Positions 31,595 to 41,071 of a DNA stretch of 64,000 bases are shown here, piece by piece. The notes under the pieces were generated by a model. That model worked only from the letters and a program-made list of their open reading frames with translations, did no database searches and had not been told where the DNA came from. The translations under genes and the position numbers were made by a program. The stretch's first letter is position 1. Every line of letters starts with the position of its first letter. Source of the DNA: Mantamonas sphyraenae STR306 (lineage: Eukaryota > Protista > CRuMs); the NCBI GenBank assembly GCA_026936335.1, contig JAPMXV010000034.1, forward strand, positions 310,001 through 374,000. The letters run 5' to 3'.

Positions 31595-32032
31595 TCACTC
31601 GCTCAAGTCTCCTTGCCACCTACCGCGTCCTTCCTCCTCACGTAACCGCGAGTCTTTCCGCTCCAGTTCCTCCACTTTCTTCAATGTCACCCTACGCTTG
31701 AGATCAATGCTCGCCGACTCCTGTGTGTGCGTCAACTGCGTCAGGTTGCCGACTTCTCGGCGATTTCTCCCTACCCCGTTTCCGTCTCTTGTGTGACGTA
31801 CCGCTTCGCTGGGAGGCTCCTCTCTGGCGTAGGCCAGCCAAGATTGCCACTCTGCAGGCACGCTATCTGGTTCGTAGGACGACGGATCATCTTCGTGTTT
31901 GTGCTGCACTTTGCGCACAAGGCCTTCCGCTCCCTCCACCTCGTAGTACACGTTGCCATGCTTATCCTTGCCCACCACATTGCGCGCACTGTTCATGCTG
32001 CCCGCCAGTCGCTTGCGAATGGTGGACCACAT
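31595..32032 (-). CDS. NDUFAF2: Complex I assembly factor NDUFAF2 / NDUFA12 family; one intron ~31722-31802
   Basis: VVGKDKHGNVYYE and VPAEWQSWLAYAREEPPS motifs followed by a charged helix. Confidence 0.8.
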   Translation of the reverse strand: MWSTIRKRLAGSMNSARNVVGKDKHGNVYYEVEGAEGLVRKVQHKHEDDPSSYEPDSVPAEWQSWLAYAREEPPSEAVRHTRDGNGVGRNRREVGNLTQLTHTQESASIDLKRRVTLKKVEELERKDSRLREEEGRGRWQGDLSE

Positions 32033-32082: not shown

Positions 32083-33307
32083 ATGGTCAACATCACTGTT
32101 CTCGATAGCAACGCCGAAATCAACGCCAGCGAGCTTGAAGCGCGCACGGGTGTCCTCCTCTTCACCATCCCCACTGAGAACTACGAGGACGAGCTGGACA
32201 AGATCTGCAAGGAGCGCGGTTACGTCAACCGCGACGAGATCAAGCTGCACAAGGACATTCCCGACCTGGAGAGCAAGCTGGAGGTGTTCTTCACCGAGTA
32301 TGTTTTCCTTTCCCCATACAAAAGCAACGGCGTGCTCATGTGTGCTGACGCGTGCACCCACAAAAAACTAGACACCTCCACGACGACGAGGAAATCCGCT
32401 ACATCCTCGATGGAGAAGGCTACTTTGACGTGCGCGACAAGGACTCGGACGAGTGGCTGCGCATCCATGTGCAGAAGGACGATCTTTTGATCATGGTGCG
32501 TCTCCATGGCCAGCCGCACGCCAGCCCGTTGGAACACCCCTTTTTGTGCTGACACACTTCCGACCTCGGCCCACGACACAGCCCAAGGAGCGCTACCACC
32601 GCTTCACACTCACCGACTCGCGATCGATCCACGCCATGCGCCTGTTCCAAGACGATCCCAAGTGGACCCCGCTGTACCGCAAGGACCGTGAAATGGAGAC
32701 GGAAAGTGCATCGGCATCTTCGTCCTCGTCCTCGTCCACGTCTGCGCTGAGCTTCAACCACGAGACTCTGGCTGCTTACGGAGCTCCCGTGCACTTTGAC
32801 ACCTGGCTGCAGGCAAACAAGGGCGACCTCAAACCTCCTGTGGGAAACAAGCTCATGTGGGGTGCCGGCGACTTCAAGGTCATGATTGTGGGTGGACCCA
32901 ACGTGCGCTCAGACTACCACATCGAAGACGGCGAGGAGTACTTTTACCAGCTCAAGGGCGACATGGTCCTCAAGGTCGTCGACAACGGCGAGTTCAAGGA
33001 CATTCCCATTAAGGAGGGGGAAATGTTCCTCCTCCCTGGCAACATCCCGCACTCACCTCAGCGCAAGTCGGACACCGTAGGTCTCGTCATGGAGCGCGAG
33101 CGTCGTGAGGGCGAGCTCGACGGTTTGCGCTGGTACTGCGACAACGAGGACTGCCGCCAGATTTTGTACGAGGAGTTCTTCCACTGCACTGACCTCGGCA
33201 CCCAGCTCAAGCCCGTCATCGAAAAGTTCTACTCTTCCGACGAACTGCGTACCTGCAAGGCCTGCGGACACACCTCGGAGAAGCCCACTGCGCCGGAAGG
33301 ATGGTGA
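32083..33307 (+). CDS. Fusion of acireductone dioxygenase (ADI1/ARD) and 3-hydroxyanthranilate 3,4-dioxygenase (HAAO/BNA1); introns 32298-32371 and 32496-32581
   Basis: ARD: [56 protein letters not shown] Ser-rich linker follows, then HAAO: [60 protein letters not shown]. No in-frame stop lies between the domains. Confidence 0.9.
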
Positions 33308-33528: not shown

Positions 33529-36010
33529 CTACTGCGCTCCACCTCCATTGTTGCTGTTGCTGTTGCCGCTGTTGCCGCTGTTGACGTCCCCTCGCTCGAC
33601 CGTCAGACGCGCAACAGATTCAAACAGGCGCTCAATCTCCGGGGCACAGTGCACAAATCCGTGGCCCCAGAAGTTGTAGCGCTGGTTTTTGATCAGCTCA
33701 ATAAAGGTGATGAGAAGGCCCCATGGTGTGGGGCGGTTCACAATCAAGCGCTCCAGCAACACGCGCGTAATCTGCTCCTGCAGGTGTTCCTTCTTGGTGT
33801 CGGAGAAGAGGAACAGGAGCACGCAGCTAAAGTAGTGCGTGTGCGTGTTGGGGTAGCGCAGGTGGTTGGCCACTGCGTTCAGGAACACATAGCGGCCTTC
33901 CGGCTCCAGGTCCACAAACAGCTGCTGGTAGATGTCCATCGACGCGTTCTGCGTGAGGTTGTGCTGCTTGTTTTGCATCTGGATCATGGCTTGCATGCCT
34001 ACGTACAGCACAAGTGAGTTGATCAGACTCACGTTGTACACCGCTCCGGTACGCTCCTGCTCCTCCTGCGGCAGCTGCACCATCAGCTTCAAGTCGCTCA
34101 GGAAGCTGCTCGGCGAGCGGTTGGCCAGGTAGGCGTCTACGTCCTTGCGGAAGGGGGCCACGCCGTGCATGTAGTCCGACAGGATGCGCGGCGGCTGGTG
34201 GATCTCGGGCAACAGGTCCACCTTGAGGTTGGGGGTGAACGCGTCCGGAAGACGCATGTTGCGCGGAAACGCACTCAAGATCAGGTTGCGCATCTGGATG
34301 CACATGGGCGGGATCACGTCGCAGAACGCAAAGTGGTAGTCGCAAAGGAACTCGGGAAAGTCGTGCAGGACCACAAGCAGCACACGCAGCGTGCCCTTGT
34401 ACAGCAGACTCACGGGCTCGCTCAGCTCCGTTGACTTGATGTGCACCTGAAAGAACTTGAACAGGTCCACAAACAGAGTTTGGTACAACGCCCAGCCTTG
34501 CGACGATTGCGACAGCAGCAGGTACGGCATAAACTGCCTGTGCGAAATGAGCTCCAGCCACGCAAACGCAAACGCAGGAAAGTGCAGCGGCTGCAGCAAG
34601 TGGAACGTGTTGCTGAACGCATTCAGCACCTGTGTTTTGATGGCGTCCAGACCACTCTCGGACGAGATCAGGCCGCTCAACCACAGGGAAAACAGGCGGA
34701 AGTACGGCCGCTGGTTGAAGCCCATCGGGTTGCTCTCGTAGTCGTTGACCAGCACGCGCACAACCACAAACAGGATGCGCGTCAACAGGTTGACCTTCGG
34801 CGCCGTGCTCATGCTGCCGCCGTAGTACTTCACCAGCAGCACCACCAGGCTGGCGTACGCATCCAGCGCTTCATACGCCAGCTTGTCGCCGCCACTGCCG
34901 TTGCTGCTGCTTCCATCCAGTGCCATTTTGACACACAGCTCCGTCATCAACTTGAAGAACAGCAGCGACAGCTCCTCCTCCTGCAGGATGCGGTGCTGCT
35001 CCATCTGCGCCACAAACGAGATGAACATCTCGTCGTTGTAATTGCTGTGGTAGTGCAGCTGCATCCAGTCGTTGAGCAGGCTGCGCACAATCTCGCGCAT
35101 CTGCGGTGCCTCATGGTGGTCGTGTGCTTCCAGCGACGTCGACGAGCCTGCACTGTCGCCTCCGTTGGCAAACGCGCCCGTGCCGTAGCCCGTGCGCGTC
35201 AGCTTTTCGTACTCGCCGCGCATGCGCAGGTACGACGGCCGCTGCACAATGTGAGTCATCTTGCGTGCCTCGTCTAGCATGGATTGCAACGCACGGCCGT
35301 CGTTGGAGCGCTCCGCGAGCATGCTCAGCACATCCAGCACGGGTCGAAACTCGGTTGCGCTGGCACTCTTTTCCTCCAGCACACACTGTTTGACGAGCAT
35401 GATGGCCACCGACACAGCTGTGGACGAACTCGTCTTTTCCACAAACGCAGCCACGTTGGCAGCAAACTCGGCCACGTTCACAAGGCGCATACGAACCAGG
35501 GCAATGAGCAGCTCGACGTGCGGCGGGTTCTCGTTCTCAATGGTGAACGTGGCCCACTTGGTCAGGTCCTGGTCAATGATCACCGAACCACACACGTCGC
35601 AAATGATTTCCAGCATGACCAGGTCGACGTGCTGCGGCAGCTTCAGCGCGTTTCGAGGCGACTCGAGCAAGCGCTTGAACAGACGCTGCGCCACAGTGAC
35701 GCCCAGCTTCACGGGTTGCTTGCTGCGCGAGAATGTCACCGCAATCATGTACAACAGACGGTGCAGATCCGACTCGCGCGGGATCTTGGCCAGTTCCACA
35801 TCGTAGTTCTCGCGCACAAACGCGTCGATGGCTTCTGCGTGCACCTGGATGGCTTCCAGCGCATGCTGAGGCGAAAGGTCGCCTGCTGTTTCGTCCACCA
35901 CAAGCGACGGGTTCCGGTAGCCTGCTCCAGCGCCCGCGTTGACTCCTCCTTGCATGCCAACTCCGCCTGCACCGCCTGCCTTGCCCGCGTGAGTGCCTGC
36001 ACCACCACCA

Positions 36011-36042
<32 letters not shown>

Positions 36043-39000
36043 GCTACTGCTTCCTGCACTACTGGTCAGGCTCAAGTTGGGCAGGCGTGTCCAGTCCTCG
36101 TACACCCGGTGCTGGTTCTGCTTCAGGCCTCCCAGTCCCGGGCGCAACGACTCTGGCAGCGCCTGCGTGGCGGTGCTCGTGCGCGGCATGTACTGCTGTC
36201 CACGTTCGCGTGCACTTTGCCGTGCCAGGTACGCGTTCTTCAGCATGTCGTCCACCTGCAGCACTGCCTTTTCCACAGCCGCCTTTTCAAACAGAGCGCA
36301 CGCTCGGTCCAGGTTCTCGCGGGTCACAACAACCACCGCTTGCTCGATCGACTTTTGCATCTGCGCGTCCTGCGCATTGCTGATGTTGCTCGACAGCAAC
36401 TGTCTCATGTGAGACTGGATCGACTGCCGCAGGTGGTCCTTGCACGACACCACCGCGTGAGCGCCAACCAGCGTCTGCACCATCATATGCGCCGCACTGC
36501 GCATCTTGCGCTCGTCCGGCTCTGTCGCAAAGTCCTTCATGATCATGTGCGTCGTCGTCGTCGCCGCAATGCCCGACGACCGGTCCACAATCATGGTGAT
36601 GATTTCGCGGATGGCTCTGTCCAGCGCAGCAAACGCAAGTCGTCGCAGGTCCGGGTACTGCTGAAACAGCTCCACACCTGTGTTGATGAAGAAGTAGGAT
36701 CCTTCGCTGCCTCCTCCTCCTCCGCTGCTGCTGACACCCTGCGAACCCGACCCGCCGTTGGCCTTGGCTTGCATGTCTTCGCGTGCCGCCTGCTGCGCCG
36801 CCTGCTGCTGCTGCTGTTGCAACAGCGCGTTGCGTTGCGTAACTTTGTATGCCATGCTGTTCGGTCCGCTGTTCTTGCTGTTGAAGTCGTCGGCCGCAAT
36901 GGGCACAATGTTGGCCAGCAGCGTCGTCGGCGCAAGTTCGTTCAGGTTCACCCCCAGCGCCTGGCACAGGCCGTCGATTTCAAACTTCAGGTTCAGTTTG
37001 AGATCCTCAAACTGGTAGATCTCGCCCAACAAGCGCAGCATGGCCATGGTCCACGGGTTGGGCACGGCAAACACCTTGCCCTTGCCCTTCTTGCAGCCCT
37101 CCAGGGTCTTGGCCACAAACGGGATCACTGCAATCAAGCGAGCCTGCTGGAAAGCTTCCACAATGAGGTTCTTGAAGTGCAACTGCTTGGCCAGCAGCGG
37201 CTTGTTCTTGGCAAGGGTGGTTTTACCAAGCCAGGCGCCAAGGTTCTTGAGCAGCGCGCGCTCGGTGGTGCTGCTTGTGATCTGATCGCTAACCAGCAGC
37301 ACCTGCACGTTGCGCAACACACACACAAGGATCAGCTCGTCCAGCTCGCGTGAGTTGATCTCTTCCACAAACTGCAGGTACACGGCGTGGAAATTGGGCT
37401 CCATAGAGATGCGCTTGACCACCAGGTATTGTGCGAGGAACGGATACACGCTGGGTTTGACCACCTGCATCAGATCTGCGACCTGGCTCTTCAGATTCGC
37501 CTTGCTCAGGTTGTTGAATGTAAAGTGGATTGCGTCCTGCACCTCTTCGTCAGCCAAATGCGACTGGTCCTGGTTGGCCATGAGCAGCGTGTCCACATTC
37601 AGCGAGGTGAACGAAGGCGCAGAGCCCGACAGCATGGTCTTGCCGTTGCCTCCTGCTGCACCTCCGCCTTGGCTCGACGAACCTCGCTTGCCAGCTGCTC
37701 CCTGTTCACGCACAAGGCCACCACTGCTCAGCATGTCGCCCTTTCCTCCTGCGCCTGTGTTTCCTCCGGCCTTGAGCGACTGTTCAATCTGCGACACAGA
37801 CATGGCGTTGATGGCGGCGCCGGCCCCAGCAGACGACGAACTCAGAGGCGCCGCACCCGTGTTCTGGATGATCTTGTCGATGTCGCTGTCCTCGTCGTCC
37901 AGAGAGTGGCCCGTGGAGCTCGATGCACCTGCGCTTGCGCTCGAGCCAATCATGGAGCCCATTGCACCTGCGCTGCCTGCCATTTCGCTCGCACCGGGAG
38001 TGGCCTGCCCGTTGGTAGAGATTTGCTGCAGCAACAGGGCCTGTTGCGTGTTGAGTTCACCTGCGCCACCGTCGGTGCCCATGTCGCCCACAGAGAGGCC
38101 TGTAAGGGTGGGGCTTGCACCGGCCGCATTCAGCGAAGCCTGGCTCAGATCCATCTTTTCCATGGCCTCCACGATTGCCGGGCGGCTTTGACGCAGAGCA
38201 GGGATCTGCAGGAGGTGTGCACAATACATAGGCCACTCCTGAAGGCGCGTGCGGAACTCGTCGATAGCACACAGGCCGAATTTGAACATGCGGCTGTCAG
38301 CTTGGTTGTGCAGTGCGTCGAGGACGTAGCGCAGTGCTACGCCAAGGGGAATGTACGTGACGAGTCCCGTGTTGATGATGGAGCCGAGGAGGCGGCCGGT
38401 GATGCACAGCTCTTCCTCCGGGTAGCGCGGGAAGAAGCGGTACTCGTCAAAGAGGTTGTGGATCATGCAGGCAAAGATGTCCTGTTCCTTCTTGTTCTTG
38501 GAGGTCTTGAAGCGCTGCAGGAGCGCAATGATCTCCTCGATGGAAATGACGCGTGTGTAGATTTTCTGGAACAGAGCGTTTGCGGTGTCCTCGATCTCGC
38601 GAGAAAACTGTTCGCTCTGGCCTGCCGTCGTGTGTCCCGGATCATTGCTGTTGAAGTTGATCAATTTGGGGTTCGCCTGCGCACACGAGGCGTACAGGAG
38701 GCGCAGTTCGTCGACGACTGCTTTGGAAAACTGGTTGACGTTGTCGTTCAGGACGCGGAAGAAGATGATGAGTGTCTCGAGGGAGAGGGCAATGGTGGGC
38801 ACGGAGGAGTCGGTCTGTGCACGCAGCGTCTTGTCCTTGAGGTACTCGATGCAGGCCTTGGCAAAGGTTGTGCCTTCGCGTTGGATGCGCTCCTGCAGCC
38901 ACAGGTCGAGGTTGAGGAACTCGCGGCGTGCAGCCAGAGCGGCAAGGTCGATGACAAACGGGTAGGGTCCCATGTCGAGGATGGAGGTGAGGGCCTTGAG

Positions 39001-41071
39001 CTCCTGGGCAAAGTCGAGGATTCGGCTGAGTGTGTTGCCGTTCTTTTGCGTGAGTTCGACCATGCCCTTGATGACAACCTTGGGCTTGCTTTGCCAGAGT
39101 GTGTGGATGACATTGGAAGAGTTTGGGTGCATCTGGAGGAGGAAGAGGGGCACGAGGACCAGGTAGAGCTCGGAAAGCATGGTGGTCCAGGTGGGATTTG
39201 TCTGGCTGATGCCGAGGAGGAGGATGTCAGGACATTGCTTGATGCCCATTTGGAAGATGTTCCACACGGCAGAGTAGTGCTCGGTCTCTGCGAGTTGGAG
39301 GAGGGTGTTGATGAGGTCGAGGGAGTACCAGTTTGCACGCGGCCCGGCGATGGCGAGACTTTCCGGTGTGTTTGCCTGCAGGTTGGAGGTGTTTGAAAAA
39401 GTGAGCACGTCCATGGGGGCGGCGACGGCGAGGTGGAGGAGGGCGAGCTGGGCAGGAATGTTTGTCCAGCGTCCGAGGAGGTTCTCCACGGGGAAGGGCT
39501 CCTTGGTGGATTTCATGTACACGGCGACAATGAGGAGGAGACCAAGCTGGTCGTGGATGTGGAATTCCTCATGGTCGAGGTGGCGGATGACGAGGGGCCA
39601 GCTGATGCGAGGAAAAAGTTCACGGACGGTGTCGACGAAAACGTCGATGTTCCACGTCTCTGGCTGGGTAGGGTCAACATCGAGGGCGGACGAGTCTGCA
39701 GTGGAAGAAGAGGCTGCGGAGGAGTTGAGGTCGTCGCCTGCGTTGTGACTGAGGGTGTCTGAGTGCATGAGAAGGGCGTCTGTGTCGCCGTCGAGGTCGA
39801 GGCTGATGACAGATGGCTGGAGACCCTTGTGTGTGCGCGCCATCATGCCAACAATGCGTGCAATGTCGACTTCGGAGACGGTGCCTTCCGTGAGGCTGGT
39901 GAGTTGTTGGAGGAGCGTTTGAAAGGTGGCGTGCGTGGACATGCACGGGTACCCAAGGTCTTCGATGACCTTGTAGATCTCGACGGACGAGGCGGTCTCT
40001 GTGACGAGATCGAGGTGGTTAGGCTCGGTGGTGTCAAAGTTGCGCTGGGAGTCGCCAAACTGGAGCTGCACACGGCGAGACGACGAGCGGCGCGAGGGTA
40101 AGGCTCTGCGGAGAGGAGGGCTGGTTGCCGCCAGCTGCGGAGGAGCTGTACAGTTGGCTGAGGAAGGAGGAGACGTTCTTTGAGATCTGCTCGTCCTGAT
40201 GAGTGGCGCAGAAGGCGAGGAGGTTGTGCATGATCCCCGAGTCGATTGTTTCGACGAGCGAGGCGTCCAGGTTCTGCACCTGGGCAAAGAGAAAGTTGAG
40301 GCCTGTGGGAGGGGAAGGACAAGTGCACATGACGGGGCGAGGCAGGGGCGGAGTGAGTACGCGGGACGAGGATGGCGGAGGGCGAGGGAGCGTGCAGCGT
40401 GGGGAAAATCTAGGGCAGGAGGGCAAAAAGCGGAAGGGCGTCCGAGAGCAACTGACCCTCATAGCGGATCTGAGGCTCGATGCTCTGGGCCAGGGCAAGG
40501 CCGACCATGATACGGAGTTCGAGAGTGAGGTTGAGTTGATCTGTGGTGCTCAGAAGAGAGTTCTGTGTGGGACGGGAGGGCGGCTGGCGGTGAGCGAGGT
40601 GCGGAATGGCGCGGGACGAGACATGCGCCGAGGGTGCAGGACGGGAGGAGGAATGGCATGAGCCGGATTGCGGGAGGATGGGCACAAAACGTACCGCAGA
40701 CAGGTTCTCCATGCAGCTAAAAACGCGGTTGATGTCCGAGACAAAGCTGGGCGAGTCCGAAAGGCGAGCAAACTCGCGGGCAAAGAGATCCAAATGCAGG
40801 CTGTCGGCCGTGTTGGCCACATGCTCCTCCATGAGGGCCTGCAGCGTAAAGATGTGTGCGTCGTGACCATAAAGATCGATGAGCTGGGGTACGGGATGGG
40901 GCAGAGTGTGAGCATGGAGTCGAACGGGAGGGTTTCAGGAACTGTGTGTGCGCCGCGCCAGCGTCTTACATGGTGCAATTCTGCTGTGTGTGACTTGACG
41001 GTCTTTTTGTTGATGTCTGCGACGAGGTACCTTATTTGGGACCCGACGAGAAAAGAGAAGGAGCAATTCAT
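33529..41071 (-). CDS. CNOT1: CCR4-NOT complex subunit 1; several 5' introns between ~40070 and 40970
   Basis: QIRYLVADI N-terminus; [116 protein letters not shown]. Confidence 0.97.

Follow-up and report, generated by a model that had tools for sequence, protein, structure and literature searches.

Organization of the locus

The window analysed here is a stretch of 64,000 nucleotides from Mantamonas sphyraenae STR306, with a GC content of about 57–62%. The FALCON assembly of this genome comprises 25.06 Mb in 78 contigs, with 59.19% GC; it was built from PacBio long reads and polished with Racon, followed by a second polishing step (PMC10492846). Reading of the sequence gave a three-exon gene on the + strand at 32083–33307, with one frame of 354 codons, flanked by two genes on the opposite strand. 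The features of the locus are as follows.

31598..32032, − strand: NDUFA12-family neighbour (Pfam NDUFA12, 47.1 bits), outside the fusion
32083..32297, + strand: exon 1, from the ATG at 32083; N-terminal part of the ARD (ADI1-type) domain
32298..32371, + strand: intron 1, 74 nt, GT..AG
32372..32495, + strand: exon 2; core of the ARD cupin, bearing the metal motif H-x-H-x3-E
32496..32581, + strand: intron 2, 86 nt, GT..AG
32582..32671, + strand: first part of exon 3; completes the ARD domain and carries the fourth ligand, the His of Y-H-R-F (Pfam ARD positions 128–157; ADI1 residues 131–161)
32672..32758, + strand: linker between the domains, containing a Ser-rich run and the in-frame Met 32693, as read from the exon 3 translation
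32759..33307, + strand: HAAO domain, C-terminal tail and stop (Pfam 3-HAO, NCBIfam equivalogs, human HAAO residues 9–160)
33532–40287, − strand: CNOT1 neighbour, intron-less, 2252 aa, with Not1, CAF1-binding, TTP-binding, HEAT and DUF3819 domains

The coding length is 215 + 124 + 723 = 1062 nt, equal to 354 codons, followed by a TGA at 33305–33307. The last 2 nt of exon 1 form part of a split Glu codon, and removal of intron 1 restored the reading F-T-E-H-L-H, colinear with ADI1. The junction of exons 2 and 3 was likewise colinear with ADI1, at residues 125/131. Searches were run exon by exon, with each exon as a separate query. Against solved structures, exons 1, 2 and 3 matched human and mouse ADI1 residues 32–85, 88–125 and 131–161, in that order, and this colinearity validates both splice junctions. 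The coordinates, the two canonical introns and the motifs proposed in an initial annotation of this DNA were borne out by the sequence, the exon translations and the colinearity with ADI1.

The ARD tail, a Ser-rich low-complexity linker and a full 3-HAO domain share one open frame, that of exon 3. Since this exon alone carries both the ARD tail and 3-HAO, the two domains lie in one uninterrupted ORF under any intron model. The initial annotation had also read the ARD through the linker into HAAO without a stop, which agrees with exon 3 being a single ORF with both Pfam matches, and had reported an out-of-frame TGA before the linker Met. This TGA was found at 32689–32691, just ahead of the in-frame ATG, which is the 38th codon of exon 3 and begins at 32693.

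The NDUFA12-family gene is arranged head-to-head with the ARD-HAAO gene, with the two ATGs about 50 bp apart, implying a very short bidirectional promoter. At the other end, CNOT1 converges on the 3′ end of ARD-HAAO, and the stop codons are ~220 bp apart.

Two other origins of the continuous frame were weighed at this point. In the first, the locus would encode two proteins from an extremely compact gene pair: the ARD would end near 32691, through an indel or an unrecognised splice or polyA site, and HAAO would start at Met 32693, translated from a transcript of its own or from an internal one. The TGA and the ATG do fall exactly at the ARD/linker boundary, a 1-nt assembly indel within the 24 nt that precede the TGA would fit two tightly packed genes, and tight packing is seen at this very locus in the head-to-head ATGs. 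However, the assembled ARD frame has its first stop at 33305, and the long reads behind the assembly were polished in two steps. In the second, the junction would be an assembly chimera or mis-join. Nothing specific points to this beyond the generic risk carried by long-read assemblies, whereas the junction is in frame and inside a continuous coding sequence, and the flanking NDUFA12-family and CNOT1 genes are intact.

The N-terminal half resembles ADI1 and retains its metal ligands

Exon 2 aligned to positions 88–126 of the Pfam ARD model (PF03079) with 51.8 bits, and residues 1–30 of exon 3 to positions 128–157 with 42.6 bits, both above the gathering cut-off of 27 bits. Exon 1 by itself gave no Pfam match at E ≤ 0.1; it weakly matched human ADI1 residues 32–85, at the expected position, in a phmmer search of the PDB (E = 1.5 × 10−3). 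The similarity between exon 2 and mammalian ADI1 extended over 39 residues with one single-residue gap (48–50 bits).

Three of the ligand positions lie in exon 2, namely His at 32373–32375, His at 32379–32381 and Glu at 32391–32393 (exon 2 positions 1, 3 and 7). The fourth, the His at 32597–32599 (exon 3 position 6), lies in Y-H-R-F. All four aligned to ADI1 His88, His90, Glu94 and His133 in comparison with 5I8S and 4QGN; we take these residues (human numbering) to be the metal ligands of ADI1. Intact ligands, together with the strong similarity of exon 2 to mammalian ADI1, would indicate selection for catalysis in Mantamonas. By these features the N-terminal half is a canonical ADI1/MtnD-type acireductone dioxygenase, with a predicted activity in methionine salvage.

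The likeness to ADI1/MtnD (PF03079; human 4QGN, mouse 1VR3/5I8S) comprises the same H-x-H-x3-E...H ligands and a near-identical cupin core. ADI1, however, is a stand-alone monomer of ~180 aa, while in Mantamonas its usual C-terminal tail of ~20 residues is replaced by a linker into a second enzyme.

The C-terminal half is a predicted 3-hydroxyanthranilate dioxygenase

Residues 69–217 of exon 3 matched Pfam 3-HAO (PF06052) over positions 6–151, with 219.4 bits (E = 2 × 10−65; cut-off 25). Two NCBIfam equivalog models were also matched above their cut-offs, NF009763 with 228.1 bits (cut-off 220) and TIGR03037 with 220.2 bits (cut-off 145.95), and the half aligned to residues 9–160 of human HAAO (2QNK). 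The Fe ligands are His at 32918–32920, Glu at 32936–32938 and His at 33050–33052. These correspond to exon 3 His113, Glu119 and His157, which align to His47, Glu53 and His91 of human HAAO (2QNK), the 2-His-1-Glu Fe(II) triad of that enzyme, and are invariant with the Diphylleia protein described below. Equally invariant with that protein is a rubredoxin-like Cys4 site formed by exon 3 C186, C191, C225 and C228 (within 33137–33265).

From these matches, the C-terminal half is a complete 3-hydroxyanthranilate 3,4-dioxygenase, predicted to act in the kynurenine pathway to quinolinate and NAD. The initial annotation had described complete ligand sets in both halves, and each was recovered by alignment: H, H, E and H at ADI1 88, 90, 94 and 133, and the Fe triad of human HAAO in a domain that passed two equivalog cut-offs.

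The HAAO half is most like the single-cupin Cys4 enzymes (yeast Bna1 1ZVF, Cupriavidus NbaC 1YFU; TIGR03037) in keeping the 2-His-1-Glu triad and the four Cys. Those enzymes are stand-alone proteins of ~175 aa, and form homodimers, whereas the Mantamonas HAAO carries a cupin of an unrelated pathway covalently on its N-terminus. One proposal is that the Cys4 site of HAAO acts as a reservoir of iron for the catalytic metal site (Liu et al. 2015, JBC 290:15621, as cited in PMC10143591).

A counterpart in Diphylleia rotans

The same architecture was found in Diphylleia rotans, another member of CRuMs (EukProt EP00002, P015187, here P0015). Its Trinity ORF of 336 aa encodes ARD (residues 58–134, 49.7 bits) followed by 3-HAO (residues 173–315, 189 bits). 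The HAAO half was 63% identical to that of Mantamonas, and the alignment reached into the pre-domain segment H..L..YG.P. The ARD half was 33% identical to exon 2 (E = 1 × 10−6). Thus the two proteins share the ARD-then-HAAO order and closely related HAAO halves; they differ in the ARD ligands and in the linker.

In the alignment, which was partly extended manually, P0015 has Phe and Arg at the His positions of H-x-H and Arg at the His position of Y-H-R-F, a loss of three of the four ligands. Diphylleia was the only other organism in which the fusion was seen, and its ARD half is catalytically degenerate by this loss of ligands. Dual catalysis would therefore not be what the history of the fusion has conserved.

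Pairwise alignment with P0015 also showed that the Mantamonas linker contains an insertion of ~21 residues, rich in Met and Ser, which the Diphylleia linker does not have. Met 32693 and the Ser run both lie in this insertion, making Met 32693 unlikely as an ancestral HAAO start. P0015 has a single Met between residues 120 and 190, the stretch that leads from its ARD tail into HAAO; this Met, residue 128, belongs to the ARD tail, and a start beyond it would already lie within the HAAO domain.

These comparisons bear on both of the alternatives raised above. The compact gene pair is countered by a continuous ARD-HAAO ORF in an independent Diphylleia transcript, and by the position of the Met and Ser run in a lineage-specific insertion into a linker that is common to Diphylleia. 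Taken with the open frame, this leaves two separate genes a rather improbable reading. A mis-join is weaker still, to the point of being barely credible, as the junction is matched in the transcriptome of an independent organism. The presence of the same join in Diphylleia indicates an old fusion, not an artefact. The reading of the initial annotation as a real in-frame fusion, not two mis-read genes, is sustained by the position of the junction within one exon, the ligands kept in both halves, and the same order of domains in the Diphylleia transcript ORF.

The age of the fusion was assessed from the HAAO domains. A maximum-likelihood tree of 70 HAAO domains was built under LG+C20+F+G4 PMSF, omitting five long-branch rows (P0106, P0058, P0046, and the N- and C-terminal domains of P0005). 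The Mantamonas and Diphylleia HAAO halves were recovered as sisters (UFBoot 95, SH-aLRT 90); a quick tree of 117 rows gave the same sisterhood with SH-aLRT 88. The sister relationship suggests a single old event within CRuMs, before the split of mantamonads and diphylleids, with the fusion inherited from an early CRuMs ancestor. A complex prediction for the N- and C-terminal halves of the Diphylleia protein returned a score of 0.00, which counts neither for nor against docking of the domains.

The architecture is rare

Relatives of exon 3 were collected by a word-indexed search of 5.8 billion proteins (top 120) and by exhaustive HMMER searching of 1.84 billion representatives (top 150). Both lists were ranked by HAAO similarity, and clustering into representatives at 50% identity can conceal fusions, as in the case of P0015, which was absent from the top 150 representatives. 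The best relatives were stand-alone HAAOs of ~170 aa, HAAO-HAAO tandems of 317–455 aa, and one protein with PF03079 and PF06052, P0015. When the 266 fetched HAAO relatives were searched by phmmer with exon 1, exon 2 and the ARD tail as queries, ARD-like sequence was found in P0015 only. The N-terminal region of P0015 (residues 1–165), used as a query, recovered no relative besides itself. The 80 best loci on metagenome contigs all stopped short of residues 1–25 of exon 3, which lie in the ARD tail, and the ESM Atlas search gave plain 3-HAO clusters only, with no ARD-HAAO architecture.

A literature search found no description of an ARD-HAAO fusion, in line with the claim of the initial annotation that none had been described. 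That annotation had also asked whether the ARD + 3-HAO architecture was already common in databases. It was not common among the relatives screened, and no Atlas cluster found contained it, but it does occur once more, in the EukProt entry for Diphylleia. The ARD-HAAO fusion would thus seem to be rare and apparently undescribed; it brings the domains of two well-known enzymes together in a new combination.

Paralogues and pathway context

Copy numbers were taken from a six-frame search of the whole genome (25,061,354 bases, 78 contigs). The fusion locus was the single 3-HAO locus genome-wide. For the ARD family, the matches were the fusion locus and one weak, divergent ORF, a stand-alone ARD-like sequence of 168 aa at G000:C56:4621-5040 (−), equivalent to L003:1456-1959 (−), with 34.7 bits to Pfam ARD. 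It keeps the H-x-H motif and the last His, and has Ala at the position of the canonical Glu ligand. As a query in the word-indexed search against 5.8 billion proteins it retrieved no homologue, and no NCBIfam model matched it. Because this ORF is so divergent, with its low score, the Ala at the Glu position and the lack of relatives in that search, the fused ARD is, as judged from sequence, the only canonical ARD in the genome, though not the sole ARD-family gene. The possibility of stand-alone paralogues, which the initial annotation had singled out for checking, is answered in part: there is no second HAAO and no second canonical ARD in the genome, but there is one very divergent ARD-like ORF on C56.

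Other members of both pathways were found in the genome, as listed here.

C51:372571-373294, + strand: MtnB, two exons, 124 + 64 bits
C51:373962-374711, + strand: MtnC/enolase-phosphatase, 204.9 bits, above its cut-off
C53: TDO, kynurenine pathway
C59: kynureninase, 456 bits, above its cut-off
C15: QPRT, kynurenine pathway

The presence of MtnB and MtnC means that the methionine-salvage pathway needs an ARD.

The two methionine-salvage genes are themselves close together. At C51:372571-374711 (+; L085), MtnB, which has a long Ser-rich C-terminal tail, and MtnC lie ~100 bp apart on the same strand. A stop separates them and their frames differ; they could be two neighbouring genes, or one fusion gene joined across an intron in the manner of DEP1, the MtnB-MtnC enzyme of plants.

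Comparison with other fusions of ARD or HAAO

A review of methionine salvage mentions two fusions only, Tetrahymena MtnBD and MtnAK (PMC2759508, PMC3698126, PMC6302742). Of described ARD fusions, the literature search found Tetrahymena MtnBD alone. In T. thermophila MtnBD the ARD/MtnD cupin is covalently joined to MtnB (PMC2759508, PMC3698126), so that a protist ARD cupin is attached to another enzyme, as in Mantamonas. The partner in Tetrahymena comes from the same pathway and the ARD is C-terminal, whereas in Mantamonas the partner is HAAO, from another pathway, and the ARD is N-terminal. The Mantamonas protein is therefore not of the MtnBD type: its partner domain is 3-HAO, and MtnB is encoded separately on C51.

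Two-cupin HAAOs form a second group for comparison. HAAO-HAAO tandems were found in P0001, P0002 (Pigoraptor chileana) and P0010, of which P0001 and P0010 are from environmental protists, on contigs that look eukaryotic. Corallochytrium P0019 has a degenerate N-terminal HAAO-like cupin followed by HAAO. HAAO with a C-terminal cupin occurs in animals (human 2QNK, 286 aa) and in Balamuthia, and P0110 is also of this type. Two-cupin HAAOs recurred among the relatives, in P0001, P0002, P0010, P0019, P0110 and P0124.

Animal HAAO (2QNK) and the tandems resemble the Mantamonas protein in joining HAAO to a second cupin in one chain. They differ in that their second cupin is HAAO-like (by weak homology of the C-terminal domain in 2QNK), while that of Mantamonas belongs to the ARD family and has an intact metal site. 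At the Mantamonas locus the N-terminal cupin matched ARD and not 3-HAO, and there was one 3-HAO stretch. The N-terminal cupin might have been a HAAO copy that had degenerated, like that of Corallochytrium P0019; its strong match to ARD and the absence of a match to 3-HAO rule this out.

Interpretation and possible function

ARD and HAAO are textbook stand-alone cupin dioxygenases of unrelated pathways. We consider that the locus is best explained, with a probability of roughly 0.8, by a genuine three-exon fusion gene that encodes a bifunctional ARD-linker-HAAO protein of 354 residues, inherited from an early CRuMs ancestor. The gene would be transcribed and translated as one polypeptide, in which a flexible Ser-rich linker of ~30 residues would separate two independent cupin dioxygenase domains. 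Each half would perform its usual Fe(II)/O2 reaction, giving a bifunctional protein, and the fusion would have arisen once, before Mantamonas and Diphylleia diverged. The most economical selective reading would be that two Fe(II) cupins are in this way necessarily expressed together.

The N-terminal cupin might in addition partner HAAO structurally, since in Diphylleia the ARD cupin persists despite the loss of catalytic ligands. This retention in Diphylleia, taken with second cupins gained by HAAO through duplication elsewhere, suggests that a structural contribution may well be made. Carried further, the fusion could be real and the ARD half still serve HAAO chiefly as a second cupin with a structural or regulatory role, making the protein a heterologous two-cupin HAAO and not a working methionine-salvage enzyme. 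In favour of this, the Diphylleia ARD half is retained with three of four ligands lost, HAAO is repeatedly found with two cupins (P0001, P0002, P0010, P0019, 2QNK, P0110), and the C56 ORF provides a second ARD-like gene in the genome. Set against this, all four ARD ligands are intact in Mantamonas and exon 2 scores 48–50 bits to mammalian ADI1; the C56 paralogue, far diverged and with Ala in place of the canonical Glu, has no relatives that the word-indexed search could detect; and with MtnB and MtnC present, the pathway needs an ARD. We regard a mainly structural ARD as unlikely for Mantamonas, where the intact ligands and very high ADI1 similarity argue that this half still works as an enzyme.

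Beyond a bifunctional fusion protein, any role becomes less certain. Co-regulation of the two pathways, or a shared iron or O2 status, as put forward in the initial annotation, is speculation. A link through iron handling is conceivable given the Cys4 iron-reservoir proposal for HAAO, as that proposal is cited in PMC10143591. In its fullest form, which we offer only tentatively, the fusion would be a synapomorphy of CRuMs, present in Mantamonas and diphylleids and perhaps also in rigifilids, and would work as a heterologous two-cupin unit. The ARD would pack in the place of the second HAAO subunit or domain, and the Cys4 site would help to keep both sites, especially that of the metal-promiscuous ARD, loaded with Fe(II), thereby coupling methionine salvage to de novo NAD synthesis.

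If the bifunctional reading is correct, the fusion would be a natural Rosetta stone that ties NAD synthesis to methionine/SAM recycling, a connection open to biochemical testing. It would also be an independent case of HAAO gaining a second cupin, beside the HAAO-HAAO tandems and the animal bicupin, and such repeated gains would point to a structural need of HAAO that different lineages have met differently. CRuMs lie near the proposed eukaryote root and have few molecular synapomorphies. A fusion common to two deep CRuMs lineages would be a candidate rare genomic change, and may serve as a marker for the group. Gene fusions are common in protists, and the significance of this one is limited to two known reactions, predicted from sequence; it may also have value as a curiosity of enzymology.

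Two further HAAO relatives, both from the set of representatives, carried domains other than cupins, and either could be a gene-model artefact. In P0228 (356 aa) an IBR half-RING is joined to a partial HAAO, and in P0165 (474 aa) MoCF_biosynth and FLAD1_M, forming a FAD-synthase-like N-terminus, are joined to HAAO.
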